Source: Asterias rubens (Eukaryota). Taken from it: DNA of 64,000 nucleotides. Position numbers and translations under genes: made by a program. A model generated the notes under the pieces. It saw nothing but the letters and a program-made list of their open reading frames with translations. It did no database searches and was not told the DNA's origin. The stretch spans positions 1,488,001 to 1,552,000 of the forward strand of contig NC_047083.1 of the NCBI RefSeq assembly GCF_902459465.1, written 5' to 3'. Each line of letters begins with the position of its first letter. Positions within the stretch are counted from its first letter, which is position 1. Positions 4,942 to 57,434 of this stretch are shown piece after piece.

Positions 4942-7900
4942 TCATTCGTATTGATCTGGAACAAACTTCGACATCTGAAGAAAGCTCTATAAAAGAAAAA
5001 AAACAGACAAACCTCAAATTATTTTTCAGTTTCTATTTGTGAGTAGTAATTTTATAATTTATTTGTGGGCGAAATAATATACTGAACTCACATGAGCAGA
5101 AGTTGCCATTTTTTGCGTCATCTCCAATAACTTGAAGAAGTCTGGCCTGTCGGAGGGTTCTGGTGACCAGCAACTCTTCATCAAATCGTACCTTTAATTA
5201 AACAATCATAAAAATATGGTTTTTAAAACAGTGCTAAACATTCTTAACCATTAAAGGCAATATACACGTTTGTACATATCGTCAAGAACCAGTATTCTCA
5301 CCCAGTGTTGTGTATGCAACAAATTATTTTGAGGAATAACTAAGATAATTTCTCATTCTCATTGGGATGATATGTCACTCTGAAGCACTTTCCAAAATAT
5401 GAGAAAGTATACTAAATAATATGGAAAGATCCCGCCATCGCCGTTCGGGTCAATTATTCTGAGCCAAGGAGTTTTTAGAGTGAACGAAACTTACAGTTTA
5501 TCACTGCAATGAGATGGTTTTGGTAGGCGGAGCCCATCCTGTACAGCTCTGATGACGTTATTGACGTCCATTCCCGGGTAGGGATGTGAACCTGTCACAA
5601 CAATTGGGGGAGGGGGAGAAAAAAAGAAATATCTTAGCAAATTGCGCAGAATTTTGCTTTTTATAGTATTATTTTCTTTGTTTTCTTCGGTTGCTTGCCT
5701 GTAGTTGTGCTTGTCCCTTGTCTTTCGGTTTTGATGTGTAGTAAACAAGGGTCCCGATTTAGTGGGCCTGTGTGCCTGTTCGGGGTTTCCCTTTTGCACC
5801 AATGTAATTTTTTATGTTTTTGTGGAAGGTAATAACATAAAATAAAAATAAAATAATTGTATATACTTTTAAAAACTGTATTAAAGATCAATGGCTGTTC
5901 TGAAGCACCGTCAATTCTATACTGACCCCCAAAAGGTGCCTGGGTTGGATTTCACAAAGAGTTAAGACTGGTATTATCTCAAGTTAGGACGAGTTTACTC
6001 TTCCTAACTTAGGACTAGCCTTAAGTTTTAAACATCTCCTAGGACTATGTCCTAAGTTAACCCTTTGTAAAATCGACCCCTGAGGAGACATTGATAGCAC
6101 ATTTCTAACGTAGTGACGATAGTGGGGTCGATCTCACTGGGAGTGTCCTTTGGACCGACGTTGGCTGTGTGAGACTGCAACTGTTTGGAAGTTGATAATT
6201 GTTGACTCAGTCTATCTAAACACAACACTGAGCCGTAACCCCTTGGATCTTATGGACTCATAAATTAGAGTAAACTTTGACCTTTCGGTAACTTACCCAG
6301 GGTGAATATTTCCCACAGTAATACTCCATAGGACCATACGTCTGACATTGTTGTATACTTGTTCTCTACGATGGACTCGATGGCCATCCAACGGATCGGG
6401 ACATCACCCTGGCATGGATGGGGAATGTCAAAGAATAACACATTGTTAGCTTTAACCAATGGGAGACTTACGGTCCTTTATGCGGCTCGGAGCGTGCGCA
6501 CACATGCCCAGTTTTAGGGAGGTTTGGCCGCGCGTTATCTGAGCAAGAACGTGAACGTCAAAACAATTTGCTGTAAAAATCTCACGTTGTAAGCATACGT
6601 AAAATTACCTTTTCTCACGATAGGTACGTATGTGCAGACATCATACGTGAGCATGAAATAAGCCCAAAGTGATGACGTCGCCTAGAAATGACACATTTTT
6701 TTTCACGTTCAAATTGCTCGCGTACTATACTGACGAGAACTGTGAAAAAGAACCGTCCACAAGTCTCACACTGCACAGAGGTCGTTTGTGCATCTGAGCA
6801 TGCGCCTCTCTTAATATTTATGCATGACGTCATAATTCTTACCCAAAATGAGGCTATGGGCGCACGTCCCCCATCACTTGCAGTGGCTGCGCCCATCGCC
6901 TCGTTTTGAATTTGCATTGTGACGTACATCATGCATACATATTAAGCGAGGCGTATAGAGTGGTCTGGGTCGGTACTTATTGCGGTCGAAACAACCTAGA
7001 CTATTTTGGGGTCTTTTGTATAATTCAGACACAATATTTTTTTCGAGGATGGACATTTTTTTCCAACATTTATTCGGTCATCTGTACTTAATCTTTAGAC
7101 GTTTACTCACATTTGAGGACATTTCATATAGGTTCTCGAAAAGAACGTCTCGTGAAAATCCGAAATCTGACAATTTGCAAGTCAGATCCTCAGTCAGTAG
7201 GATGTTACGTGTCGCTAAATCCCTGTGGATAATCTAAAGGAAGACGAACAAAAAATGTTATATAATTGCGGTAACACAATGTGTGTATATACTTGCCAGG
7301 TAGAGTTCGTTCTTACAGAACTGTCTTGCTTTATTCTACTACCGCGGAGTAGATGTTCGGATGTTCGGGAGACTTCTCAGTTCTGAAAAGAACTGTCCTG
7401 CCTTTTAACTACTACCCGGGCGGATCGAAGGAACAGAAAATCCGCTGGGACTACTATTTTAGCGTATAGGATCGTGATTAACCGTACTACCGCGGAGTCA
7501 GTTCTTGAATTGGTCTCAACGTTTCGACGTGCTCTAGTCATCGTCAGGAGAAATGTTTACCCAATTCTGACAAAGCAGATGGAGTTTCCTAAAAAATGTG
7601 TGACTTTGTAGAAAATAATTTTGTTTGCAAAATAATCAGGCCCCATGCTTGCAAGTTTGTAACTTCCTGTCAAAGCTCATACTATTGTAACTGGCAATGC
7701 GACGTTCCATTCAAGAGAAATACAAACTGTTTTTTTTTTAAACATACCAGAAAACTGGTCTGGTCCCCTCACTTTGTTTATGCTCAAAACGTGAAACTAG
7801 GAATGCGACCAAAAGTCCCCGACTCACCTGCATGGACGATAGATACTCCATGCCACTAGCTATCTGATGAGCAAACTTCAGAATGAGGTCAGAGGTCAAA

Positions 7901-10900
7901 TCACAGGGCGAGGAAGCAGACCAGGACTTTCTCTTATCTCGTAAAAAACTCTGAAGGTTTCCTTTGGATGCGAACTCGAAGATCAAGCAGAAAGGCTCTT
8001 TGAGATTAAGCGATAAAGATTATGAAAAGAATGTTACACAACACCCGGAGCCAACGACTTTACGTTTCACCCGAAGGACGAAGCATCGTGGTTTTAACAG
8101 TATGGCTTAAAGACACATGTTTCACCACTGGGACTCGAACCCACACTCTGCTAGTCAGGGGTGGATTTCACAGAACTTAGGACTAGCCCTAGGCAATGCT
8201 AAGAGATAGGACCAGTCTTAAGTTAGGATGAGTTACTGGTCCTAACTTAGGACTGGTCCTATCTCTTAGCATTGCCCAGGACTAGTCCTAAGTTAGGACT
8301 ACCTTTGTGAAATCCACCCCAGAATACCAGAGCTTGAGACAAGTGCGCTTGACCGCTCGGCCACGACATGATGTAAGCACTAAATGGGTTCCCCTCTCAC
8401 CCTGTGCAAAGATCTGCATTATAATACACCTGGATGAAGGGAAGCAACTTATGGTTAGGTCTGATGGACGAGCGCACAAACATATGAGATTCGAGCCCAC
8501 CTTTCAATGACTATTGCTTTAAGAACTTGAGACTTATGTCAGAGACGACTTAACCACAATCTGATAAAATACAAATTACCTTTATCCGTACAGCAACCCA
8601 GCAACTCTATGATGTGTGGGTGCTGTTCAAGCGTCTTACACACATCCAGTTCCTTCATGAAACCTGACACGTCATTAGATGACACCGAAGCTGTGGAAGC
8701 AGTTTGTAAATTCTATATTAGAATGATACTGTTGATTTCAAGAAGAAAGATGATAAGAATTGGGATCTTATCAACTTCTTCTGATAGCGCCCTCCTTTGA
8801 ATCATAAAATGACAAGTGTTGAGTATTGAGTTTTGAGAGTGTATTGAGCCCTACCTTTAAGCATCTTCACAGCTACAGTGTGTTTCTTGCCATCTTCTAA
8901 GATGCCATCTGCAATCGCCATGTACACCACACCAAACGACCCCTCGCCAAGAACATTCAGCATCTTGATTCGCTCCCGGGGAAAGTTGTCCCTAAACGTC
9001 TTGGGTTGGTTGAGAATGTCCAGTGACACCGAACATTTCTTCGACAGCCTCTAAAATCGGTAAAAAATAAAGAGACTCAAACTTGTGATCGAGTTTTCAG
9101 ATCGCTACGACTACCTCACATTTCCACAACAATTTGCTCCAGGACTATACTTAAGACGAGCAAGGTTTTAAACTTTAAGACTATACCTACCGTTGCTTTC
9201 AGAGTAAGTCATTTTAAAGGAGCTCTAGATTAAAGGAACACGTTGCCTTGGATCGGTCGAGTTGGTCGTTGAAAAGCGATTGGAACCGTTTTTTATGGAA
9301 TCCATATGATTAGAAAGATATTTTAAAAGTAGAATATAATGATCCACACAAGTATCACTCGAAACTGCGTGGTTTTCCTTTTACCTCGTCGACATATACA
9401 CGGTCGGCCATTTATGGGAGTCAATTGTTAGTTCCCAAAGTAAAAGGAAAACCACACAATTTCGAGGCAAATGTGTGTGGATGATTGTATTCTACTTTTT
9501 AAACATCTTTCTAACCATATGCATTTTATAACAAACGGTTACAAACGCTTTTCAAAGACCAACTCGACCGATCCAAGGCAAGGTGTTCCTTTAAACACAA
9601 TGTTTATCAACAAGTTGTACAAGTTACTCCCCACTAAATACCATGCAAAGCTTGAAACATCACTCAGACTGCTCAAGTGTATTTTGTGTGTCGATGAGTG
9701 AGACCGGGATTTGAAAAATGGAAAATGTTTTTTGTAATTTGTTTTGACTGGCTGGCAGTTTTTGTTTACGCGGAAAGTATCAAAAATGGGAAGCGTAGTA
9801 GTAATCTGACAAATATTGAGACTAGATTAAGCTATTAACATAACCCGATATCTCCAAAAGAGAATCCCTACCTTTTTTGATATGACGCTTAGACGACTCA
9901 GATCTGTGACGTCACGGGCAGGGCTCCATTTGAATTTGATGGTCTTGCATGCACCGTATACAGCGAATGCGCAAATTAAGAAAACGGCCAGGGCTAGTAT
10001 TGCCGCCACAGAGAGTAGTATCAAAATACCTGTAAAGGTTAACATGAGTTGAAAAACCAATAGGAGACTTTCCAACACTAGGTGGCAGCAGACATACCGG
10101 GTAAATTTCCATTGTTTACGTAGTTCTGAACATGCGCATAATTCTGAGAACAATGGATTTACCCGGTAAGTCTGCTGCCCTCTATCGTCCCAGAAAGTCT
10201 CCCATTGAAAGAAAGTGCAGTCGAACCTCTGAATTTGGCATTGTGGTGAAAGTGCTTTACCAACAGAAATATATTTGGCTAGTGCGGGATTCGAACCTCC
10301 AAGATTTTAGGTTTGAGATTATGGCCTGGGATGGTGCAAAGTCCCACTTTTCTGTTATAAACAACCCTACCCAATAAGCCACTTCGGAGTTCCAGCTGCG
10401 CATGTCTGTTACTGCTGACAACGCATGTTGTCTATCTCCAATAACCTTTTGACAACACCAGCGGGTATTGTCAAAAGGTTGCGTGAGATAGACGAAACCC
10501 GTAGTCAGCAGTAACATACATGCGCCACTGACATTCCGAAGTGGCTTGTTGCCATTACACCCGCTGACTAATGAGCAGTGCTGGGGATGTGTCCTTGTTT
10601 GGGTACGAGGTTGTTTAGTGTGTCAGAGAGGAGAGATTTTGGAAAGTTGTTGGTTTGACAACAATCGATTGAAACTAAATAGTTATTGACAACATGTCTG
10701 GTGGTGTAGATGCTTTTCTATAACGTATTCGATGTTTTGGATAACTACCAAGATTTTCACCCTCGTTCAGAATATGGCAGCGCGCCATGTCGTGCCCGCC
10801 GATTACGAAAAAAACAAATGGGAACAAGGTTGAACAGTCCTACACTCACTCCTTTCTACGGCAACAGTGACTGTTAACTTCTGGTACGTTTTGTTGTCAG

Positions 10901-13900
10901 GGTACAATACGCTGCACACCAGTCGTTTCCCATTGTAATTAGCCTGTGCCCTGAGTGTGATTCTGCTCACTCCGTTCCAACCCCCGTCATGCTCAGATTG
11001 TGATTCTGTAATTAAGAACATTACATTGTATCTCCACCATGCAAAGTTTCAAATTCTACTCAGAATGTACATGTGTTACTGCAAACCTTTCTCTATCGTA
11101 TTACCACTGTGCAAAGTTTCAAATTCTACTTATGTACATGTGTTACTGCAAACTTTACTTTATCGTATTGCCACCATGCAAAGTTTGAAATCCGTGTTCG
11201 TGGTGTTACTGCAAACCTTACCATATCGTATTACCACTATGCAAAGTTTCAAATCCATGTACGTGGTGTTAGTGCAAACCTTACTATATCGTATGTCCAC
11301 CGTGCAGTTTCAAATCCTACTCATGTACATGGTGTTACTGCAAACCTTACTAGATTGTATCTCCCCCATGCAAAGTTTCAAATCCTACTCATGTACATGG
11401 TGTTACTGCAAACCTTACTAGATTGTATCTCCCCCATGCAAAGTTTCAAATCCTACTCATGTACATGGTGTTACTGCAAACCTTACTAGATTGTATATCC
11501 CCCATGCAAAGTTTCAAATCCTACTCATGTACATGGTGTTACTGCAAACCTTACTAGATTGTATCTCCCCCATGCAAAGTTTCAAATCCTACTCATGTAC
11601 ATGGTGTTACTGCAAACCTTACTAGATTGTATCTCCCCCATGCAAAGTTTCAAATCCTACTCATGTACATGGTGTTACTGCAAACCTTACTATATCGTAT
11701 GTCCACCATGCAAAATTTCAAATCCTACTTATGTACATGCGGTGTTGCCGCAAACCTTATGTTAATCATATTTCCACCATCCAAAATTTCAAATCCTACT
11801 TACCCTGTGTTGAATCTGGAATGTCAATCACGTCGCCATCTTTGGAGGTTATGGCCCATCGGAACCCGTAAGCCTGACTCGACGACAGAGACTGGCAGGT
11901 GAAACTGTAGACCCCCCATAAGACAATTGTCATGCCACAAGTTGTACCCCTGCAGGCACCAGACTCTGTCGTCATGAAAACGGTTTCAGGCGGATCTAGT
12001 AAAAAGTGAAACAAATTATAAATATTTCAGCTTGTCTACACTGACGCGTGCCTAAAAGTTCTTTCACATGAGAGTAATTTAGCAAAGGTCCCTTGCTAAA
12101 TTGTAGCATGGTTGTAAGATTTTGCAAATGTACCTCGTGTGAAAGGACAACAACTTAGCCTACACTGTCCAAGTGCTCTGCAAAATCCCGCTAAACATTG
12201 CTACATTTTACAACCATGCTAAATTGAAGCAAGGGACCCCAGTTAAATTGATGCCGTGTGAATAGCACTTAAGTGACTCAAAAACGTACCAGACAGTTGT
12301 CAGTTCTCAGCATTAATGACTTAAAATAATGAGTATTTTGTGTCGAGTTGTGTGTACAGATGAAGGTTTAGGGCTTTTTCAAAGCGGTGAGTTCCTTTTG
12401 GGCCAAGCCTTACAGGCTCCGTTCAGCCACGTACACCTAAAGAAACGGCACATTTTCAAGATAACCGACGGAAAGGCTCATCATTTTTCTTTCAGTTTTA
12501 TTTGGAGGACGCAAGTCTTTGCCGAATGATGATGATGATCAAAATAAAATAGCATGCACTGACAATTGAGAGTGACTTATTTTTGCTACTACTGATTGAG
12601 AAAAAACAACTGGAGGGTTCAAACTTACAGTTGATGTTCAAAGTGAGGTTGGCACTACCGAGGTGACTGCCAATGAATGATAACAGTCTACACTCAAGCA
12701 CTGATCCAGATTGATTTCGAGTTGGAATCAGATCAAGGGAAACTGTTTCACTATCTCTGTCGAGAGAGTAAAAAAAAAAAAACAGTGAAATGCAAAGATG
12801 AAGAATTCAAGATTACAAAAATACATTTCTTTCCATACTCTCATAAAAGAATAACGACAGTTATTACGGACTAAAAGCAACACATATCTTTAAGTAACAC
12901 TTTATAATACATATAAATGAATAGAGTATACTCTATACGGGGCCGTTTTGGTAAGCATGAGATTGTAAAAAACAGCCAGACAGACAAGAAAACAAGACAA
13001 CCAGACAGACAGACAAACAGACAAAAGGACAGATGAACATAAGACATGACACAGCGAGTTCGTAATAAAAGCGACAAAATGTTCAAGCTGAAAATAAATA
13101 AGACAAGTACTGAATAGATGGATGTGGTTCAATTACATAGGATGGGAAGCTAAGATACATAATGGGAGATAATGTTACAAACAAGCCATGAGTTTTTTTC
13201 TACCAACTTTGAGGCTCCTCATCCTGGCCACAGATGTATATGCTATTTTCACCACGTGATTGACAAAATGTTGTTTGTTTGTGTGTTAAGATGGTCTTCC
13301 CATCAAGGGAACTCGTGAAACTCCTATCACATACAAAATTTGGGCTCAATCGGTCATCGAAGTTGCAAGAAAATAATGAGAAAAAAAAGCCATTGTCGGA
13401 CAAATCTGTGTGCTTGCAGATGCCTAAATAAAAGACTTCAGGTCCGAATATTTTAGTGAGAGATTCCATTTTTCTCAAACACTACATCTACTTAAATAAG
13501 ACATCTAGCTGAAATAAGACCGGCCAAGCCCCACCACCAAATTCCCGGGGGTAAATTTTCAACATGGCACTCACTGAGAATCTGGCTGGTTCGATGATTG
13601 TATTTCCCCATCAATGTACAAAATCTTTGAACCGGTACACCCCTCGCTGCTACAAAAGAACCGCACAGGTAGACCCTCTTCCAACACCGAAGTGTTCATC
13701 GTCAACTGCAACTCACTGCATGGGTCTGAGTTAAATTAAAGAGAACACACACATAGAAAATAGTACTTTTAGTCAATGAATAATTGTCAAAAGGACAAGT
13801 TGATTTCTTTCCATCCGAAAACTCATTTATCATACGGAATTGACCTGGGCCCATTTATACAGAGCTGCGTCAGCAGAAATATTGCTCAACAGTTGTCTGA

Positions 13901-27813: not shown

Positions 27814-30800
27814 ATGAGCGTGACGGAGACGAAAGGCTACCGGGAGGGAGGCTGGGGTTGGCCCGTTGTATTTTCCGTCTTCCTGTCCCAGTTTATACTC
27901 TACGGAAACCTCAAAGCAACCGGTGTTCTCATCACTCATATCCACCAGGATTACAAAACCAGTCTGTGGACGATTGGTCTGATTAATTCACTCTATTATG
28001 CGATGCAGTTTTTACTGTGTAAGTTTTTGGAAAGGTTTGCGGTAACACCATGTTTAATGGCTACACTGTAAAAAAAAAAATAAAAAAAAACCCGTAAAAT
28101 TTAAGGTGCTTACTGGCAAGCTATATGGTGCCAGGTACAGTGCAGTGGAAGTTTTGTAACTTGTGCCTTGAAGGGGTTGTTTGCAAAACTTCCACTGTGA
28201 AATTTACTGCACTTTACCTAGTTGCCAGGTAAAGCACCTTAATTTTTACGTTTTTTTTTTTATTTTTATATATTTTTTTACAGTGATCTATAAATGAGTT
28301 GGGGTGGTTCTGAAAAGAACCGTTGGTTGTATTTGAATATTGTGTATTAATTTTGTTGTGCATGTTTTGTTATTGCTGTCTTAAGCCTTGGAGAAAGAAT
28401 TTTTTTATTTTTTTTAAATTTTCATTTATACCATCGGCCCATTATATTTGGTCGGCAAGTTGTTTGCAACAGCTACTTTTATTTTCTTACTTTTTTTTTT
28501 TAACTACAAATAATTTGTCATTGTGTGTACTTTTTCAGAATGCTTTAATCATTAGGGTGTGGGTCAAGCAGCCGACTCACGAAACGCTAGGATTAATCTC
28601 GGGCTAGGACGAGTAACCCGTCATAATTTAAGATGGGTTCAATGCGTCCTACGTCTATGGATGCAGAACTGAACTTGTCCAAAGATTAAATCTAAAGCTA
28701 GAAAGAGTTTGGTGAAATCGTCGGCTGGGAAAACCTCGTCATATTCTTTTCTCAGACCATTATTCAAAAATAAGAACTGTGCCGCCCAAACACAGTTTAC
28801 CCGTAAAACAATCTGCCTTCCGACCGCGCCCAGTGGATCCAGCAGTACATCGCCACGGAGTGATAAGACGCCACTATAGACGTAGTGACCTCTGACGTCA
28901 CACGAAAACCATAACATGATTCGCGCGCATACCGCCGGGCAAAACCTTTGTGTTTTGGCAGCCAGCTAGAAAGAGTACGCAATCTTACAATGATCGACTA
29001 CGCAACTCGGTGCCCGGCGAAACATGACGTATAATATAGTGTTTTGTCAACAGAGGGCGGTTTGAATGTAAACATAGGTCACATCGTCTATGTTAAGCCC
29101 TTTTCACACTGTATCCCCGTGGAATACATCCCCGGTGATGCCTCGGGTCTTTTTTACCCCATGGTTTACCCCGACGCACTTACTTTCACACTGTATCCCT
29201 ATTTCACGGGGTTCTGGTCGCACGTTCCAAGAACACTTATAGAGGTTTTTTTTGTCAGGAGTAGGGGTGGGTGGCTATTCCCCGGGCAGACAGAGGGCAG
29301 ACCAGGGGTAAAGCAATCACAGTGTGAAAAGGGTGACCGTTATTTCCAGGGGGCAACCCCAGGAGTAGTAATGTGAAAAGGGTTTTATTGTTGTTTTAAA
29401 GAAAGTATTTTTGTTTTATTCAGCACCATTTCCTGTGGCCGTCTCCCATCGGGTCGGTGTCCGTCCAGTCATTGTAACTGGTGGTATCTTGAGTGGTCTT
29501 GGACTCGCCATCGCATCGCAGAGTCACAGTGTCCCCGTCTTAGCTGTTGCCATGGTTGCACTTGCAGGTAAACAAAAATAATATTTAACTCAAAAACTCA
29601 CAAAAAGGCCGTGTCCGAAACGGAGTCTTCGGCTACAGTTACGGCTACTGTAGTTCTCCTTTCCTTTAAAATGGGTAATCTTGACGCTAGGTGGCAGCAT
29701 ATTAACTGATATTTTAATATCATTTATAAGCTGTCACCGACGATCAGAGCATACTGATCGAAACGTCGAGTTAATCCAACGGTTCTTTTCAGAACCACCC
29801 CAACTCATTTAGAGATTGTTATTACATGGTGTTACCGCAAACTCTTCTATATCTTATTTCCACCATGCAAAGTTTCAAATCCTACTTAACAATTTAACTA
29901 TTCACTTCACAGGAATGTTTTTAAGAGCTGGTAGTTAAAGTCTCCATTTTGCTTTAAGACTCTATCTAATGGGAGACTTTTGGGACGCTTGGTGGCAGCA
30001 GACTTACCAGGTAAAATCAATTGTTCTCGGTAATGTGCGTGTGCTCAGAACTACGTAAACAATTGAAATTTACCTGGTAAGTCTGCTGCCACCTAGCGTT
30101 CCAAAGTCTCCCATTGAATGTTATCTTTTCCGAAAGTGTTTGTGTTTGATTTCTTCAACTATTAATCTGGCTCTTTGATTGATCAGGTACGGGTGCAGCG
30201 TGTGTGAAGGAACCACTGTTTTCCCAGATGGCCCTCTACTTTCACGAGAAGTACGCCTTCGTATCATTCCTTGCTAAGATGGGTGCCCCGTTCGGAATGA
30301 TGGTCTACGGTCCAGCAACGCAAGCACTGACTGAATACTACGGTTGGCGTGGAGCTCTGCTCATCCTCGCCGGGCTGAGCTTCAATCTCACGGTATGCGG
30401 TTTGCTCATTTGCCGCTCATCAAGCTCAAGATTCAAACGAGCGCCCTCTGTTGCCCTAAGGATGTCGGATTATCAAGACTTGGACAGGTTAGATGAGGAA
30501 GATAGGAGGCTTTATTATTGCTGCAGTCAGTTAATCTCAACCATGGGATTAGCTGTATTTAAAGACGTACGGTTCATACTTATAACTATGATAAAGCTGT
30601 TCAGCGGATTCGGCTATGCTGGGATTGTCATCTACATGGTTCCGAACGCGTTGTCTCTAGGGCTAGACGCGCACCAGTCCTCCTTCGATACAACAGCGTG
30701 GGGAATTGGCAACCTTCTCGGGCTCTCCTTCGCTACGTTGGTGATGCACACAAAAGTGCTATCCGAATGTTCAGTGATGGGGATTGGGACAAGTCTAGCT

Positions 30801-31394
30801 GTCATTGGATATGTGCTGGATCCTTTTATCGCATCCTTTGTAGGGCAGATGGTCGTGACTGCCATTATAGGGGCCGGGACAGAGAGTCTGTTCCTAGTCT
30901 CCATTATATTAACCCGGTACCTGACTAATGCTGATAACAGAGTGGTCTTTCTTTACACGTGGCAAAACTTCATCACAGGACTGTCTTACCCCGTCTCTGG
31001 ATTTGTATCAGGTGAGATATTCATTCATGCTAAGCACAAACATTTGCTTAGCATGACATTTCATCTTTGTTCAAAGTAGGATTACCAACCAAATTTTCAT
31101 TTTTTGCATATTGCTTGATACTGGTATCCAGCTGCTGAAAGTCACGAGGAAACTTGGTATAATCTAGTGTCTTGAAAAGGCGTATAATTGAAGGCCCGTT
31201 GAAATGATCAAAACACCAACCCAATGAACATTCATAGTTTAAATAACGCATTTTCTCGTTTTACAGGATATCTGTTCGAGATAACTGGAGACTTCAAGGT
31301 TACCTTCTTTGTGTATAGCGGCACAATGCTAGTAACGGGAATTAGTATCATACTGTACTATGTTTACACCAACTATAAGAAGTCAGCCAAATAA
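27814..31394 (+). CDS. MFS transporter, SLC16/monocarboxylate-transporter-like, about 433 aa
   Basis: Exons 27814-28018, 29424-29567, 30187-31011, 31267-31394 (1302 nt, phase-1 introns). N-terminal EGGWGWPVV signature typical of SLC16, many TM helices, YFHEKY and GWRGALLILAG motifs. Confidence 0.9.
28874..29090 (+). mobile_element. Dispersed TIR element; an inverted copy occupies 1-190
   Basis: Ends catagacg / cgtctatg; 28880-29086 is the reverse complement of window positions 1-190. Confidence 0.8.
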
Positions 31395-32444: not shown

Positions 32445-45600
<13,156 letters not shown>

Positions 45601-49648: not shown

Positions 49649-50702
49649 AAGGTTTGTTATTTTATGCATATGTTGAGAAACACCAAGTGAGAAGACTGGT
49701 CTTTGACAGTTACCAATAGTGTCCACTGTCTTTAATTAAATATAAATATGTGACTTATGGTTTTCTGTCAAACCTGTACACATTAGATATGTCCATGGAC
49801 ATTGTTTACATAAAATATTGGATAGAAGGTTCAATGTTCAGTGTGCCTACACCCAATCAAGTTTACACCATGATATCCCACTAAAAACTCAACAGCGGGG
49901 TTTTTGAAAAAGGTGAAATTAAATATTCATTTTGAAAAACCAACAACTGAAACTTTGTGATGTTATTTCTCTTCATGTATAACAAATGTTCAAAAATAAA
50001 CCACCTGTTGGCTTTTGCTGATGTGACCAAGACTCAAGATCATCCACTTCCAGATGACTCGCCCGATCGTCGCACACGTGTGCGTGTGTGTTTACCTCTG
50101 TCATGTCTTTGACCCGTCGACCATCGTGATTTTTAGCCGCCGCTCACGTCACAGGGGTATTACGTAATCATTATCATTCACAAGTAGCTTTTGACTCTCG
50201 GCTGAAAAAGCCGCGCGGCCGGGTGCATATTTGACTCAAGTTATTTATTACTAAATGCAAATTTTAAGAGTAAAATGTTTTTTAACCGGTATCTACGATG
50301 TCTATTTTGCCATAAAAAGGTAATACTTGAAATGTTGAGATCATCCTTTATTGGCTGTTTAAAATCCAGTGCAGTAATGGCATGCATAGCTACAAAAAGG
50401 GGCTGAATCGCAATGTTGTTTTGCCTTGGTTGAAAACAAGTTTACTTTCCCATTATCCAATGGTGTTCTAATGACGTTGCGTCGTCAGTGCAGTTGTCCC
50501 ACTAAAGGCACCGGGCACGTTCGGTAATTGTCAAAGACCAGTCTTCTCACTTGTGCGACCCCAGATTATATTTTACTATGAGAGTATAGTAAAACAAAAA
50601 GGAGTGGAAGAGCAAAACAAGACGCTCAGAATGTATGTATTGTTGTATTTTCAGCTTTTAGAGGTGTGCTCCTCCCAGTTCAAAATTCCCATTTCCCGAA
50701 TA

Positions 50703-53700
50703 ATGGCATTTTTGAAAATTTGTCAGTGGTGTGTTCTGGCTATCTCGGTCACGCTCGCCATCACAATGGACGAAGAGCCTCTGACCGTCACATGTCAGAA
50801 CATACGTCATGACAAAATACTCGGCGATCTTGACAGGGGAGAGGGTAGCAAGATGTCTCTTGAGAGTTGCACAATAATTACGCAATCCAGCTACTCGTCA
50901 GACAGCATACACGAGTTGTGTTGTCAACACTGCCATAGTTGTTCTTTGCCTGGAACTGAAGAAGGGCCGTGGAAGGGAAAGACTGTTTCGAGAACCGTGA
51001 AATTGAATTCGACCAAGCTACACGAGCGAAAGAAAAGACAAGGTAACTTATTCAACCACCGGTTCACCTTTATGATCCCTGACATACAGCCACGGGTTTA
51101 CTTTTAATCCCCGGGTTCAGAGTTGACCCGGGTATTATATTTCAATGAGCCTAGTGTGATCTTAAGATGTGTAGCAAACCATAGAGAACCTTCTCTCTGA
51201 TCAAACCTTAATTGCCTTGAGTCATATTGACAGCACAGTAATCATCTCAAGCATACTTTTATTTCAATCAATTTTTCTATCGAAGTATTTTTTTAAATGT
51301 CCAGGTATCACCTGCGTTAACTTAATTATGCTTAAGCAACTAAGTTTCAAAATGTTCTACCATTAAAAGTATTGACATACTTTTTTTTGCACATAAAGGA
51401 TGCTAGCTGCCTGACTGCCTCCCCCTCCATATCAAATGACCCCTCTTGATTGACACCCCTCTAGGACGTGTGGCATCGTCCAGTTTAGGATATCATGCCA
51501 TATGAGCTGACCCGTGGGTACTATGGTTAAGCCAAAGACAATCATTATTTTAATTGTGTCATCAAGTGCTGACAGTGGCCCTCCCTGCTGGGTTTTATGA
51601 CAATTCTTTGTACTTTTGTTTTGTGAAATCGATCCCGATATACACCGATGTGTGTAGCACTGCTCTAGAATTGCAAAGGTCGTGGGTTCGAATCCCACCC
51701 GAGTAATATGCCTGTGATTTTTGTCCACATGACTTGGGAAAGTACTGAGTATACAGTGCTACACACATCGGTGTATGGGTAAAAAAACCTATTTAAAAAA
51801 AATCAATTATTGTTGATCGACAGAAGGTGCTGAGAGACCCTTGCATACATCGGGTACCGAGCGAGTGCTTCAAGCAGGTCGCACGTACCACTTTCCATGT
51901 CCAGTTTTCTCTCCTGGTGACGTCATCAATGACATAGTTTGGTTCAAAGGGAGCAACTGCGACCCCAAAAAGCGACAGAAAATCCTGCAACACTACAACC
52001 CACCCGACGGCACATTGATAACTCCGAGTCCACACTATCAGTTCACTGAGACCAATTATGGCTTGGTCATCGAGTCTGCTAACCTGACTGATTCTGATCG
52101 GTATTGGTGCAAGGCGCACAAGGAACCAATCGGGGAATATGTGGAGGAATTCCTGGATATATTTGTCTTGGGTGAAAAGATTATAAACTTGGAAATTAAA
52201 GCAGACTGTGGCCCTTTTCGAAACCACGGCTTCGGCTTTTGATTCAACTGCAGGCTCCGTTCTCTGGTCTAAGGCCCTAAGCGCGTACGCAAAGCACGCG
52301 TAAATTGTCGAAACAACCGCGGGGCCAAGCTAACCGAATCCAATGTCGAAGGTTCGTCGAAAAGGGTGTGTGTTTATCACCTATGACACTACCGACCCCT
52401 TGCACTGACGTCACACGCGGCTGACGTCACACAATTGTTTTCCAATTTGTATTTCTCCTGGCTTCAGTTAGAGGTGATAGCTTGGTAACGATATGAAAAA
52501 GTGTTCATCGACAAGAAACACATTTCTCATTCAGACATATGGTCATTTATGAGCCTTCGCTCGTCCTCAGCGCCTTGCTTTAACCAAAGGCGTTGGGATG
52601 GGCAAACGTATCATGCACTGTCATTAGTTTAATAATGCACATTCCCATCATGCATCATACTGCACCATATTTCTATGCACTGCATACAATGACGTGCTTC
52701 CTGAACAAGAATATGTGCAAGCTGATTAGCCCATCCCAGCGGTCCTGGATAGACTGGCCGCTGGGGGTGGCTATAATTTTTGACTCGGAAAGGGGTCAAT
52801 TCTCTCCTGCGACTTTTTAATAAAAGAAATTCTAGTGAATTCAATCTTATTTTTTATTCTTTTCCACTCGTCAGGTACAACGTTTCCAATTCACAAATGG
52901 CCAGACACGGACGAGGATATCCAAAGAAAATCCTTAAACTTCGCAGAGGCTAAACTCGTCACGTGTCCAGTGATGTCACAAACTAGTTCAAGGCGAGATG
53001 ACGTCACCGTTTACTGGTCACGCCTAAATACAGAAGACGGCCAAAGTATGGAGATTGTTTTCCCTGATGTCGTCGGAGTTGTGGCAGGTGGAGAGTACCA
53101 TGTAGATGGTGACAATAATCTGGTGGTGGACAATTTCAGCGGAAGGGAAGAAATGTATTGCTGTCATGTGTTTCAAGAAGACACAGCTCCAAGACAAGGC
53201 TGTGTGAGAGTAGTATGGGGAGGTGAGAGTTTGTAACTTCAGGACGCTAGGTGGCAGCAGATTGTATTTTTTTAACCTGACCATGCGCACATTCGTTTTG
53301 AACAAATTGTTTTCTTGCAAAGTATTGTATTTAATTCAAATTCACACTTCTCATCAAACTCGGTCTTTGTCTGTTTCACTTTGGTATTCATTTACCGTGT
53401 GAATGCTTTCGTTGAATTTTTGCAGTTAAAAACTAATAGACTTTTATCGCAGTGCAGCCATCTTGAATTTCTACCAAATGATATCAATCTTACCAAACCG
53501 AGGCTGGAAGAACAAAATAGTCTGGTTTCTATTTGCAAAATTGGTTATTAGCATTCATTATTGTCATTCGAGAATACGAGGAACATGGCCAAGATGGAGA
53601 CAGCATGATAAAGGTCTATTCTGATCTTTGTTCACAGCAACCCAAGAACCAAAATACCCTGTCATCTCGGCCTGTGGTGACATCAAAACTCCAGAAGGCC

Positions 53701-56700
53701 AATGTGACGTCAGACTTGAGTCGTACCAAGATTTCCTTCAACTGGATTGTTTAGTGACAAATGTATACCCTAGGCCTGACGTCAGCTGGTCACTGAAGGA
53801 CTGCATTGGTACAAATGCTACGGGTTTCTCCACCTGCAACGATTGGACGTACGATAATGTCTCAATGACGTACAGTGCAATATCGAAGTTATATTTGCAT
53901 AGCTTACCATTGGGGTCCTTTTCGTGTAATTTCATCTGCACGTCGCTTGGTGGCGCCATTCAAAATGACAGGGAGTCATCTTCTGTTCAAATATCACGTG
54001 AGTGTTGCTTGCTTCGTAATAACACATGTACGCATAGAGTATGTTTGTTTGCTTATTATTATCTTTTCTGTCAAGGGAACTCGTCAAATTCCCACGGAGG
54101 GATATGAATGCCAAGCTTGCAACACAGCCAATCTCTCTCATACAAGTTGTGTTGACGTCTATGGTTATGAATTGCACAAAATCAAGAAATGTGATTCAGT
54201 AGCTACTGACAAACCTTATTTTAGACATTGTGAAATCAGCGGTTAGCTTGGTAGGTATGATTCGAACCCACAACATAGCGATTGCAAGTCCTGCAGTCTA
54301 GACCATGCATTATCTCACTTTGCTTCATTAAATTCTTAAATCAAATCTTTGTTTCATGTATGCACAAACCTATTAAACTATGTGTACAGCAAGATTTATT
54401 AAATCTAATAGAAGTTCGAAATCATTTTAAAAATATTTCCTCTGATGTAATACTTTTTTATTTTCTCAGGTGCCGAAGAAATCGAGTCCAGCTGCAACTT
54501 TGCTCTTCTCTGTATAATGACAAGCATCTTTGTGACTTTGTTGATAATTTTGGTCATCAGATTTTGTTTAGCTTTTCCAAGATGTCAGGGTTTTGTCGTG
54601 AAACACGTCAGTAATATGGGAACTCTTAATTGCCGTGTGGACGACGAAGAGAAGCTGTCACGGAATAAAGATATAAAGCTTGAGACACAAACGGGTAAAC
54701 AGCTCTCTTAAAGACACTGGACACTATTGGATTGTCGAAGACCAGTCTTCTCACTTGGTGTATCTCAACATAATATGCATAAAATAACAAACCTGTGAAA
54801 TTTTGAGCTCAATCGGTCATCGAAGTTGCGAGATAACAATGAAAGAAAAAAACACCTTGTCACACGCACGTGTGTGCTTTAGATGGTTGATTTCGAGACC
54901 TCAAAATTCTAAATCTGAGGTCTCGAAATCAAATTCGTGGAAAATTACTTCTTTCTCGAAAACTACGTCACTTCAGAGGGAGCTGTTTCTCACAATGTTT
55001 TATACTATCAACCTCTCCCCATTACTCGTTACCAAACGAGGTTTCATGCTGATAATTATTTTGAGTAATTACCAATAGTGTCCACTGCCTTTAAAGGCAC
55101 ACGTTGCCTTGGAATAAGCGCTTTGGGCTATAAAAACAGTTTGTTATGAAATAAATATTATTATAGTTATTGAGATTTATTTTACAATCAAACCCCGGTT
55201 GCCAAAATTGTTGACTATTAATAAAACCTGTTGACGAATGTTATCAAAGGTAAATAATTGTTTTAATTAGTTGCTATGTTTTATGTATTTTCATTTTAAG
55301 AATTGACACCTTTGGAAATGTCACCGATGATCGTTCAAGGAAGTGAAGGCGATGCCAATACCAAAGGTAGACTTTTCTTCATTGATATTACAGTCTTTTA
55401 TTTATACACTTTCTGTCACTTTTTGTAAGTTTCGTTTTGAAGAATACAAAATAAAAATGGGCGTTAATAAACATGCTATAATAATATGTAAACCAAGATG
55501 ACGCTCTTGGCGCGAATGTGATTGAAAAAAAGAAAGAAAAAAAAGAGATGCAATGAATTACAAACTAATATAGAAATTTCCGGGTTTGAACTGGTAATAA
55601 TAAAAGTGGCTTCTTATTTGGCATTCAAATCCGTCACCCAGTGACCCCCAAGGCGCTTCAACAATCAGTAGTTACCTCGCAAAGGTGAGTGCACGGGGCT
55701 ACGCTTGACGTACAATACCTCATTTTTACATAGTACGTATTAATGGTTTACGAGATGTTGTGACGCAATATGCAACCAATCAAACCAGGAACACCGAGGC
55801 GAACCACTATAAGTAAACTGCCTTATTTTACGTGCGTTACACAGCAAACGGGACCAATGGCTTTACGTTCCAGCCATGGTCTTAAAGGACTTGAACCCAA
55901 ACACACCATAGCTTGCGTCCGTTGCTCTCATCCGTTCAGTGGGGAGTCTGTTCCAAAATGACGGGCCAAATGTTGAGAGCGATCGGCCTCATCACTAAGA
56001 GTACCTCGTGAATGTGTATAAGAGATGGTCGTTATCAGAGCCAAGTTGCTGGGGAAGGTTCGTAGATACGTTTAAGTCCATGGATACATGAATGTTTTTG
56101 TGTGTAGATATCAAAATGCAAAAGAGAATAACCAAGAAATACCTTTCCTCGTTTCCGTTTTTCAAAACAGAGCCCGTGTGTCTTATTAATAGCCGAACGA
56201 ATCATGACATCAATTTTACAGGTTTGTTTGTTTGTTTGTTTGTTGGGGTGTTTTTGTTGGGGTGTTGATGGTGTTATGATGTTTGTCTGTTTGTTGGGGT
56301 CGGTGCTGGGTGTTTGTTTGCAGTTTTGATTATTTGTTTGTCATGTGTTTATTTGGTTGGGAGTACAGATTGGCCTATAGGCCTATAAATATTCATTAAT
56401 TTTCTGGAAGAAAATCACCACGTCCGCACCAGCATTATGGAATTCATAATGGTGATATTTCGTGACGCTAAGGCCATGTTCTTCCATCTTTTTCAGACAA
56501 CACATACAACTGGGTCTCACTTGGGGAGCTTGTCACCAATCCTGATGACACCAACAATGGATTCCACCACATCCGTGACGTCATACCTGCACCAATCCAA
56601 GTCGGCGGATTGGTTATCATAGACTCCATTAGCATGCATCAGTTTACTTCAGAATATCAATACAAACGTGTGAATTTATTCAAACAATTACCGGGAAAAT

Positions 56701-57434
56701 ATATCTGCGTCACATATTTCACACCAAATAAGCTTATTTTTGGGCTGAAAATGGGTAGACTTCAGATTTTTGATCCTGATAAAACCGAAATAAGCGCCTT
56801 TGCTTCCATACTGCCGGTTGGGGATACTGAAGTTGAGCTTACCGATATCTCGGTGGACTGCCAGGGGTTTGTTTTTGCCGCTGACTCTAAAGGGAAAGCC
56901 ATCTCGGTGTTCGATCCCGACGGAGTGTACATTAACCGAGTAGAGATCAACATCGTACCCATATTCATCTTCGCCCACACCACTGATGAGATGAACAAAG
57001 TTGAACTTTTTGTCAGCTCCGAATCTACCGTTGAGATGTACGGTGTCAGCAGGAAGAGTTTTTATCCTTACCGGGCTACGATGGGAGCCCCCAAATACAT
57101 CGTAGACGACAAAATGGCAAAGGCCGAAAGCTTCCGCTCGGGTGGGATTACCGTACGAGGTGACAACCTCTTCTTGTTGAACAAACTACCCGACGACAAG
57201 AACGTGCAGGTTATACAACGCAAACACGCCGGCGGGGACGAGGAACACAGGTTCATTGTCGCCGTCTCTGATGAGGACGAGGGTGATACAGTGACGTCAC
57301 GTGGCATCAAGATCAAGGGAATTGCTTTCGCCGAGGAAGACGAAAACATTTTTGTTTATTTTGACCATGCTGTTTGTATCTTTAAGAAGACTAACAAGAT
57401 GCTGTCGAGAACAAATGAAACACCTGCAGTTTAA
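50703..57434 (+). CDS. Gene C: type I membrane protein, signal peptide-Cys-rich propeptide-RKKR-Ig-Ig-Ig-TM-cytoplasmic NHL-like beta-propeller, about 874 aa
   Basis: Exons 50703-51042, 51824-52171, 52875-53222, 53638-53997, 54470-54694 (TM), 55301-55366 (66 nt), 56497-57434. All phase-1 GT-AG, total 2625 nt open. Ig motifs FPC..IVWF..DSDRYWC, VTC..VYW..MYCC, LDC..VYPRPDVSW..FIC. Confidence 0.88.
54708..55094 (+). mobile_element. TTAA-flanked MITE family 1 (about 380 bp), full copy
   Basis: ttaa-agacactggacactattgg ... ccaatagtgtccactgcct-ttaa; TIRs with TTAA at both ends. Confidence 0.9.
56497..57434 (+). CDS. Terminal intronless exon of gene C encoding an NHL-repeat beta-propeller
   Basis: Acceptor ttccatctttttcag|AC is in frame with ORF 56610-57434. 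Clear NHL-type blade LTDISVDCQGFVFAADSKGKAISVFDPDGVYINRV; further blades GGITVRGDNLFLLN and IKGIAFAEEDENIFVY. Confidence 0.8.

Follow-up and report, generated by a model that had tools for sequence, protein, structure and literature searches.

An immunoglobulin-domain membrane protein of sea stars with a predicted cytosolic NHL-type beta-propeller

Known signalling routes of single-pass receptors with immunoglobulin (Ig) domains involve kinases, phosphatases, TIR domains, death domains or short tyrosine motifs. NHL propellers, for their part, have been described within TRIM ligases in the cytosol and on the extracellular side. We analyzed a stretch of 64,000 nucleotides (nt) from the sea star Asterias rubens (RefSeq assembly GCF_902459465.1, contig NC_047083.1, positions 1,488,001 to 1,552,000 of the forward strand), hereafter the window, in which a gene at positions 50703-57434, referred to as gene C, appears to join the two. 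An earlier reading of the letters alone, made with no database searches (the sequence-only reading), had proposed that gene C encodes an Ig receptor with a propeller as its cytoplasmic domain. We estimate at roughly 80 % the probability that gene C is a transcribed type-I single-pass membrane protein of the Ig superfamily (IgSF) with three extracellular Ig domains, one transmembrane (TM) helix and a cytosolic NHL propeller, a figure that covers architecture and topology and not mechanism. Judged from its sequence, the protein would be a new combination of known parts, namely an IgSF receptor with a new class of predicted cytoplasmic domain.

Exon model and transcripts of gene C

The sequence-only reading had assembled gene C from seven exons joined through phase-1 GT-AG introns into a 2625-nt open reading frame (ORF). 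We rebuilt this model from the window and found that exons 1-6 and 8 (numbered as in Table 1) do join into an open 2625-nt frame of 874 amino acids (aa) plus a stop codon, with AG/GT borders and all introns in phase 1. All seven exons, their borders, their phase and the open frame therefore hold, and what had been overlooked is a further exon of 51 nt at 56171-56221, whose borders in the window read cag/AGCCCG...TTACAG/gtttg. The frame stays open when this mini-exon is left out because it is 51 nt long and in phase (phase 1). The corrected gene C comprises 8 exons, 2676 nt and 891 aa. A segment of 16-17 aa (consensus P-V/L-C-L ... I-x-x-T-D) lies between linker and propeller in all full-length relatives (A. 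amurensis, Patiria and Acanthaster), and in Patiria miniata, whose exon layout matches that of gene C, the counterpart of the mini-exon is a separate 48-nt exon at the same position. Given the symmetric phase-1 exons, exon shuffling is a plausible origin for this arrangement.

As transcripts we used assembled contigs, not reads, from four public runs placed on positions 50690-56689 of the window, and compared them by alignment positions and depth alone. One contig of run X1 (record 1; 2241 nt, depth 27.8) is collinear with exon 1 (from 50735), exons 2-5, 117 further letters and the start of the tail exon, with all introns skipped. The 117 letters between exon 5 and exon 8 correspond to exon 6 (66) plus the mini-exon (51), and the direct junction 55366/56497 of the seven-exon model is accordingly absent from the transcripts. 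In the same run, depth in the bin 55290-55489 was 9.05, versus 9.2 predicted for exon 6 (27.8 x 66/200), and depth in the bin 56090-56289 was 6.26, equivalent to about 45 aligned bases of the 51 in the mini-exon. Records 18 and 21 of run X5, records 12 and 15 of run X3 and record 7 of run X2 contain the same junctions piecewise, the junction of exons 1 and 2 being supported by X5 record 18 as well as X1 record 1. X1 record 1 reaches from exon 1 into the tail exon, so that TM and propeller exons belong to one spliced RNA, as had been expected, via two small exons rather than by a direct join.

Introns 5 and 1 contain very high-copy interspersed repeats (54690-55290 and 51490-51890), whose contig depths sum to between 1e5 and 6e6 in each of the four runs. 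The intron 1 repeat carries a tRNA-like stretch (ggttcgaatccc, at about 51680-51705), which suggests a tRNA-derived short interspersed element.

Propeller, ectodomain and topology

The tail encoded by exon 8 was modelled with AlphaFold2 from 8 family sequences, yielding 24 strands in six four-stranded blades with an N-terminal strand that closes blade 6 (mean predicted local distance difference test, pLDDT, 70; predicted template modelling score, pTM, 0.73). A profile of the 8 family tails searched against PDB sequences matched TRIM3 (9.5e-9), Thin (1.5e-8), TRIM2 (7.5e-8), TRIM71 (6.6e-7) and Brat (7e-4); all significant E-values (9.5e-9 to 8e-4) belonged to these proteins, and no other family scored below E 0.1. 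These matches run mainly through the one NHL blade that the sequence-only reading had quoted, which aligns to blades of TRIM3 and Thin and is thus real. In Foldseek searches with the tail, the NHL domains of Thin, TRIM2 and TRIM3 stood at or near the top, and the top structural matches included the RNA-binding NHL domains of Mei-P26, Brat, NHL-2 and TRIM71. The language-model neighbours of the tail were NHL clusters, and fold searches of the AFDB clusters and Swiss-Prot returned generic propellers alone (SGL, TRIM2/71, WD40). The invariant residues of the tail are those of the structural NHL motif (G-F-x-F-x-x-D...G...S-x-F-D..G). The expectation that about 310 aa would fold as a propeller was borne out by the six-bladed model together with the NHL profile homology, and we therefore classify the tail as a six-bladed propeller of diverged NHL type.

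Several observations weigh against this assignment and against the wider reading of gene C. The tail model, built from 8 sequences, reaches intermediate confidence; Pfam NHL (PF01436) was unmatched on the window tail and on its orthologues with hmmscan at E <= 10; and the sole Pfam match on the tail was SGL (E 0.0034, 17.4 bits versus a cut-off of 26.3). The canonical NHL motif is present in one blade only (blade 3), and WD40 propellers scored just slightly lower in the fold searches. No distinct binding face emerged from loop-class conservation (0.43-0.55 across classes) or from charge. As to the transcripts, the run type was flagged only as "RNA?" and the library type was guessed.

Classification of the gene as a TRIM-NHL protein was considered and rejected: Pfam scans found no TRIM domain (no RING, B-box or coiled coil), and the N-terminal 560 aa consist of leader, Ig domains and TM segment.

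The three Ig domains called by the sequence-only reading are reasonably supported by the Pfam score of domain 1, by the Cys/Trp patterns and by an all-beta model with tandem Ig matches. Exon 2 of the window matched Pfam I-set above the curated cut-off (27 bits versus 23.7), and domain 1 of the orthologue matched V-set (34.5 bits, E 2.5e-8). Exons 3 and 4 of the window gave no significant Pfam match; both have the Cys...Trp...Cys spacing, exon 4 showed a weak C1-set match (E 0.13), and its counterpart in an Acanthaster paralogue matched C2-set_3 at E 5.6e-4. The full-length AlphaFold2 model of the orthologue was poor (pLDDT 47.6) and is informative solely for the TM helix and the Ig folds; over Ig2-Ig3 it was all-beta with pLDDT 55-78 (60-78 in the exon 4 region). 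Foldseek matched its ectodomain to the tandem Ig structures of RAGE (V-C1), CD166 and SYG-1. A dibasic site stands in the Patiria and Acanthaster proteins at the place matching the R-K-K-R of exon 1, and the long Cys-rich N-terminal segment is found only in Asterias; the exon 1 segment is plausibly a propeptide, with putative cleavage at this furin-type site. The third Ig exon is exactly what A. amurensis isoform X2 (P0002, 769 aa) lacks and P0154 has, a skip that preserves the frame because the exon measures 360 nt with phase 1 at both ends. The exon-4-skipped form was not seen in the runs placed on the window.

A single TM helix had also been proposed. Besides the leader, strongly hydrophobic 19-aa windows occur only at aa 474-503 (Kyte-Doolittle up to 2.98), and the orthologue model has a helix at 475-500, in agreement with the proposal. 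Acidic residues precede the helix and basic ones follow it (F/L-P-R-x-R/K...K/H) in every homologue. The ectodomain contains 21 Cys and five N-x-S/T sequons, the propeller 4 Cys, and only the predicted TM helix separates the Ig domains from the propeller, which follows a linker of about 80 aa made of the end of exon 5 and the two small exons. Ig domains need an oxidising compartment. Taken with this need, the type-I layout and the positive-inside rule lead us to place the tail in the cytosol, as does the way Cys residues and sequons are spread over the protein, and the propeller very probably faces that side.

Constraint, relatives and genomic neighbourhood

Logan contig L001, from a related species, carries the corresponding exon at 71 % nt identity; comparing the tail exon with it, we obtained a ratio of nonsynonymous to synonymous substitution rates (dN/dS) of 0.27 with a synonymous rate (dS) of 0.88, homology beginning at the splice acceptor. 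Against the syntenic orthologue of A. amurensis, dN/dS in exon order was 0.36, 0.12, 0.55, 0.29, 1.0 (TM exon, 70 codons) and 0.42 (tail), with aa identities of 71-97 % per exon. The most conserved part is the V-set domain of exon 2 (96.6 % aa identity, dN/dS 0.12). The tail is a constrained coding exon under purifying selection.

Divergence from A. amurensis is uneven along the gene. With introns included, nt identity to the A. amurensis locus (L005) was 93-96 % over 44-51.2 kb, which contains exon 1, 85 % over 52.8-54.7 kb and 80.5 % over 55.1-57.7 kb, and dS was 0.32 for the tail exon and 0.07-0.15 for the Ig exons. The A. amurensis protein is three residues longer at the start of the tail exon. 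At the same place the X1 transcript differs from the window at 22 of 186 positions and by a 9-nt insertion/indel. The 3' half of gene C may contain old haplotypes or have undergone gene conversion.

An exhaustive HMMER (phmmer) search with the tail across 1.84 billion representatives retrieved only six clusters at family level (E <= 1e-28); the named ones were all from sea stars and the other two were short unnamed contigs. From rank 7 on, three matches were scanned against Pfam and had 5-11 NHL repeats each, two of them also having bacterial-type domains. No urchin, holothurian or other animal protein was found at family level in this search, which was not accompanied by a dedicated scan of all echinoderm genomes. 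In word-index protein searches the tail alone, under a length filter that leaves out full-length relatives, retrieved one 261-aa fragment, and the family proteins P0003 and P0002 used as queries retrieved one Acanthaster protein and A. amurensis isoform X1 but not the protein of gene C itself. Run over bacterial and archaeal genomes, the family pattern gave 44 pattern matches and no relative, hence no sign of contamination or recent transfer.

The relatives comprise isoforms of 769 and 889 aa in A. amurensis (XP_071809719.1 and its isoform X1), proteins of 831 and 369 aa in Patiria miniata (LOC119739402 and LOC119727884), and in Acanthaster planci a protein of 829 aa and isoforms of 564-637 aa (LOC110987703 and LOC110975072). 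The order of parts is that of gene C in the A. amurensis 889-aa, Patiria 831-aa and Acanthaster 829- and 637-aa proteins, and the A. amurensis gene is a syntenic orthologue with matching flanking kinase genes. The whole architecture is conserved in two orders of sea stars, and the family looks like a sea-star innovation common to the Asterias and the Patiria/Acanthaster lineages. The 369-aa Patiria protein (P0004) is annotated as tail only; a V-set-like Ig exon lies about 2 kb upstream of its start (L003:7707-8018) and is 29 % identical to P0003 residues 50-161 (E 4e-15). An incomplete gene model, or else an isoform from an alternative promoter, may account for this soluble form.

The sequence-only reading had presented the architecture as undescribed. 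Our literature search found no Ig+TM+NHL protein and no receptor with a cytoplasmic NHL domain, and the architecture was not returned by Pfam, structure-library or language-model searches; a language-model search with the whole protein returned FSTL4 and semaphorins, which combine Ig and propeller outside the cell, at just 0.72-0.77, below significance. Novelty stands to that extent. It does not extend to the gene models, as RefSeq already predicts the architecture in three sea-star genera, in each case as an "uncharacterized protein" whose tail has no domain annotation. What the family lacks is study, not discovery, and it appears to be restricted to Asteroidea.

The features of the window are summarized in Table 1. 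Its order is kinase, gene A, kinase, gene C, where gene A is a diverged paralogue and the only other locus recovered by tblastn with gene C. The tail of gene A aligned to the family profile with hhalign (probability 74.5 %, E 2.7e-5), a remote likeness to the gene C propeller. The A. amurensis orthologue has tyrosine-kinase genes on both flanks (L005), and one Patiria family member adjoins a tyrosine-kinase gene (L003), so that the association with kinase genes is conserved in all three loci examined. The possibility of paired receptors, with a shared ectodomain and either a kinase or a propeller as tail, was rejected, as the Ig exon upstream of the plus-strand kinase and the third Ig domain of gene C were dissimilar (BLASTP E 4.5; one kinase Ig exon compared). 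Between gene A and the plus-strand kinase, a 291-aa open frame (30204-31079, plus strand) matched the Major Facilitator Superfamily (E 1.7e-8). Runs of N occur within the plus-strand kinase region at 36347-36513, 39523-40022 and 40110-40296 (854 bases in total).

Table 1. Exons of gene C and neighbouring features, in window positions
Feature	Positions	Strand	Content	Basis or remark
Gene C, exon 1	50703-51042	+	Start codon, hydrophobic leader (likely signal peptide), Cys-rich N-terminal segment of ~90 aa, R-K-K-R before border	GT donor, frame
Gene C, exon 2	51824-52171	+	Ig domain 1 (V/I-set)	Pfam I-set/V-set
Gene C, exon 3	52875-53222	+	Ig domain 2	Cys...Trp...Cys-Cys pattern; contigs join exon 3 to exons 2 and 4
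Gene C, exon 4	53638-53997	+	Ig domain 3 (C-type)	Skipped in A. amurensis isoform X2
Gene C, exon 5	54470-54694	+	Single predicted TM helix (about aa 475-500), basic juxtamembrane stretch F-P-R-x-x-x-F-x-x-K-H	
Gene C, exon 6	55301-55366	+	22-aa linker, predicted cytoplasmic; conserved S-P-M motif	Frame, homologues, contig depth
Gene C, exon 7	56171-56221	+	51-nt phase-1 mini-exon, 17 aa (E-P-V-C-L...F-T), leads into propeller	Borders, homologues, transcript
Gene C, exon 8	56497-57434	+	Six-bladed NHL-type beta-propeller, 312 aa, and stop codon	Fold, NHL homology
Gene A, diverged paralogue	24006-19262	-	Leader and V-set Ig exon (24006-about 23610), second Ig exon (23350-22985), TM exon (about 22141-21960), 260-aa propeller-like tail exon (20044-19262)	
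Receptor-tyrosine-kinase-like gene	33788-45000	+	HRDLA(S/T)RN 43732, DFG 43792, glycine loop 35740	
Receptor-tyrosine-kinase-like gene	5000-12000	-	HRDLA(S/T)RN 7227, DFG 7167, glycine loop 8948	
Ig C2-set exon	33788-34183	+		Upstream of plus-strand kinase exons

Possible function and comparison with known systems

The protein would be made with a cleavable leader and an N-terminal segment ending at the dibasic site, followed by an Ig ectodomain that may bind a ligand or a counter-receptor. By analogy with the NHL domains of TRIM2, TRIM3 and TRIM32/Thin, the propeller could serve as a non-catalytic protein-docking platform that recruits cytosolic partners, the products of the adjacent receptor tyrosine kinase genes being possible ones. 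A new receptor class that signals through such a scaffold instead of a kinase, as the sequence-only reading had proposed, is a hypothesis that goes beyond the supported architecture. We hold this combination of a ligand-binding ectodomain and a docking scaffold tentatively, at somewhat less than even odds, and favour it over RNA binding, catalysis or a diversifying immune receptor; its main rival is adhesive anchoring to the cytoskeleton.

In that rival, a possible reading to which we give about one chance in four, gene C encodes a cell-adhesion molecule whose Ig domains adhere homophilically or heterophilically and whose propeller is anchored to the cytoskeleton or to motors, with no ligand signal relayed. 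Adhesion and recognition molecules (RAGE, CD166/ALCAM, SYG-1) have tandem V-C Ig domains like those of the ectodomain model, a similarity of Ig folds that is however generic. The propeller is acidic (isoelectric point, pI, 5.2), and its nearest PDB sequences are the NHL domains of TRIM3, TRIM2 and Thin. NHL domains of TRIM2, TRIM3 and TRIM32/Thin bind cytoskeletal proteins (myosin, filament proteins).

We regard as unlikely a fast-evolving immune or self/non-self receptor of a lineage-specific multigene locus, with the propeller as an adaptor module. It would fit a family that is known from sea stars alone, has two or more diverged paralogues in each species and is clustered with other Ig receptors (tyrosine kinases), the strong allelic variants seen in run X1 at the start of the tail exon, and the low identity of the 3' half of gene C to A. 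amurensis relative to its 5' part. The membrane-distal V-set is nevertheless the most conserved part of the protein, which is the opposite of what a diversifying recognition domain would show and is our reason for disfavouring such a receptor, and the excess divergence takes in introns, indicating a regional effect and not selection on binding residues.

A slightly less likely proposal, which extends the docking scaffold, is that the Ig-TM-NHL proteins are obligate partners of the interleaved Ig receptor tyrosine kinases, such that the propeller, once ligand is bound, would either dock onto the kinase or a kinase substrate or, at the membrane, pick up particular mRNAs. The Asterias window and A. 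amurensis both preserve the interleaving, and a kinase gene also lies next to one Patiria family member. If true, this would be a receptor output module without counterpart in vertebrates or insects.

More doubtful again is a membrane-tethered RNA regulator, whose propeller would bind RNA in the manner of Brat, Lin-41 and Mei-P26, whether while held at the membrane or once the tail has been freed by regulated cleavage. The best structural matches are indeed RNA-binding NHL domains (Mei-P26, Brat, NHL-2, TRIM71), two paralogues (Acanthaster P0151 and Patiria P0004) have basic tails (pI 8.2-8.9), and P0004 is annotated as tail only, which the Ig exon upstream of it may reduce to an annotation gap. 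RNA binding is disfavoured by the acidic tails (pI 5.2-5.5) in gene C and its direct orthologues and by the excess of acidic over basic residues in the loops of the predicted top face (18 D+E versus 12 K+R).

That the propeller is a six-bladed enzyme of SGL, paraoxonase (PON) or PAL type (a lactonase or lyase) and not a binding module is very improbable. The SGL match of the tail lies below the curated cut-off, the family profile finds TRIM-NHL proteins only in PDB with no SGL, PON or PAL chain, and the invariant residues are those of a structural motif and not a metal-binding set; catalysis is disfavoured because no enzyme family was matched. An annotation artefact, with two neighbouring genes (one Ig-TM, one propeller) wrongly merged or with the tail exon forming a transcript of its own, could draw on the 274-aa ORF within the tail exon (56610-57434) and on the 369-aa Patiria annotation without Ig or TM, and is close to refuted, as this ORF has only a TTG start (as the sequence-only reading had noted) with related-species homology beginning upstream of it at the acceptor 56497, an intron-less contig covers exon 1 to the tail exon, and independent RefSeq models from three genera have the same fused architecture.

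Under the favoured architecture, gene C represents a conserved, transcribed and constrained fusion that places an NHL propeller, predicted to be cytosolic, right behind the membrane of an Ig receptor, and it would offer one more link between the cell surface and partners in the cytosol. How far this matters is bounded by the family's confinement to sea stars and by its functional blankness. Patiria miniata is a workable laboratory echinoderm.

Among known proteins, the "uncharacterized proteins" of sea stars in RefSeq are true family members of gene C, unnamed and with no study found. The neighbouring Ig-type tyrosine-kinase genes adjoin gene C, with no detectable sequence similarity between the kinase Ig exon and gene C. 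In teneurins and in peptidylglycine alpha-amidating monooxygenase (PAL) the propeller is extracellular or luminal beside the ectodomain, whereas in gene C it is predicted to lie across the membrane from the Ig domains; PAL is moreover a Zn enzyme, and no such site is evident in the gene C propeller at the level of sequence. Compared with TRIM-NHL proteins (Mei-P26, Brat, NHL-2, Thin/TRIM32, TRIM2, TRIM3, TRIM71/Lin-41), gene C has no RING, B-box, coiled coil or filamin domain and instead has a leader, three Ig domains and a TM segment, and its tail is acidic rather than basic, with one canonical NHL blade and below Pfam NHL detection. The likeness to IgSF receptors and adhesion molecules (RAGE, CD166/ALCAM, SYG-1, IL1RAPL1, Ig receptor tyrosine kinases) extends to the likely leader, the tandem V/C-type Ig domains on phase-1 exons, the predicted single TM segment and the presence of a predicted cytoplasmic part. 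That part is a beta-propeller in gene C, in place of a kinase, TIR domain, phosphatase, short motif tail or PDZ ligand.

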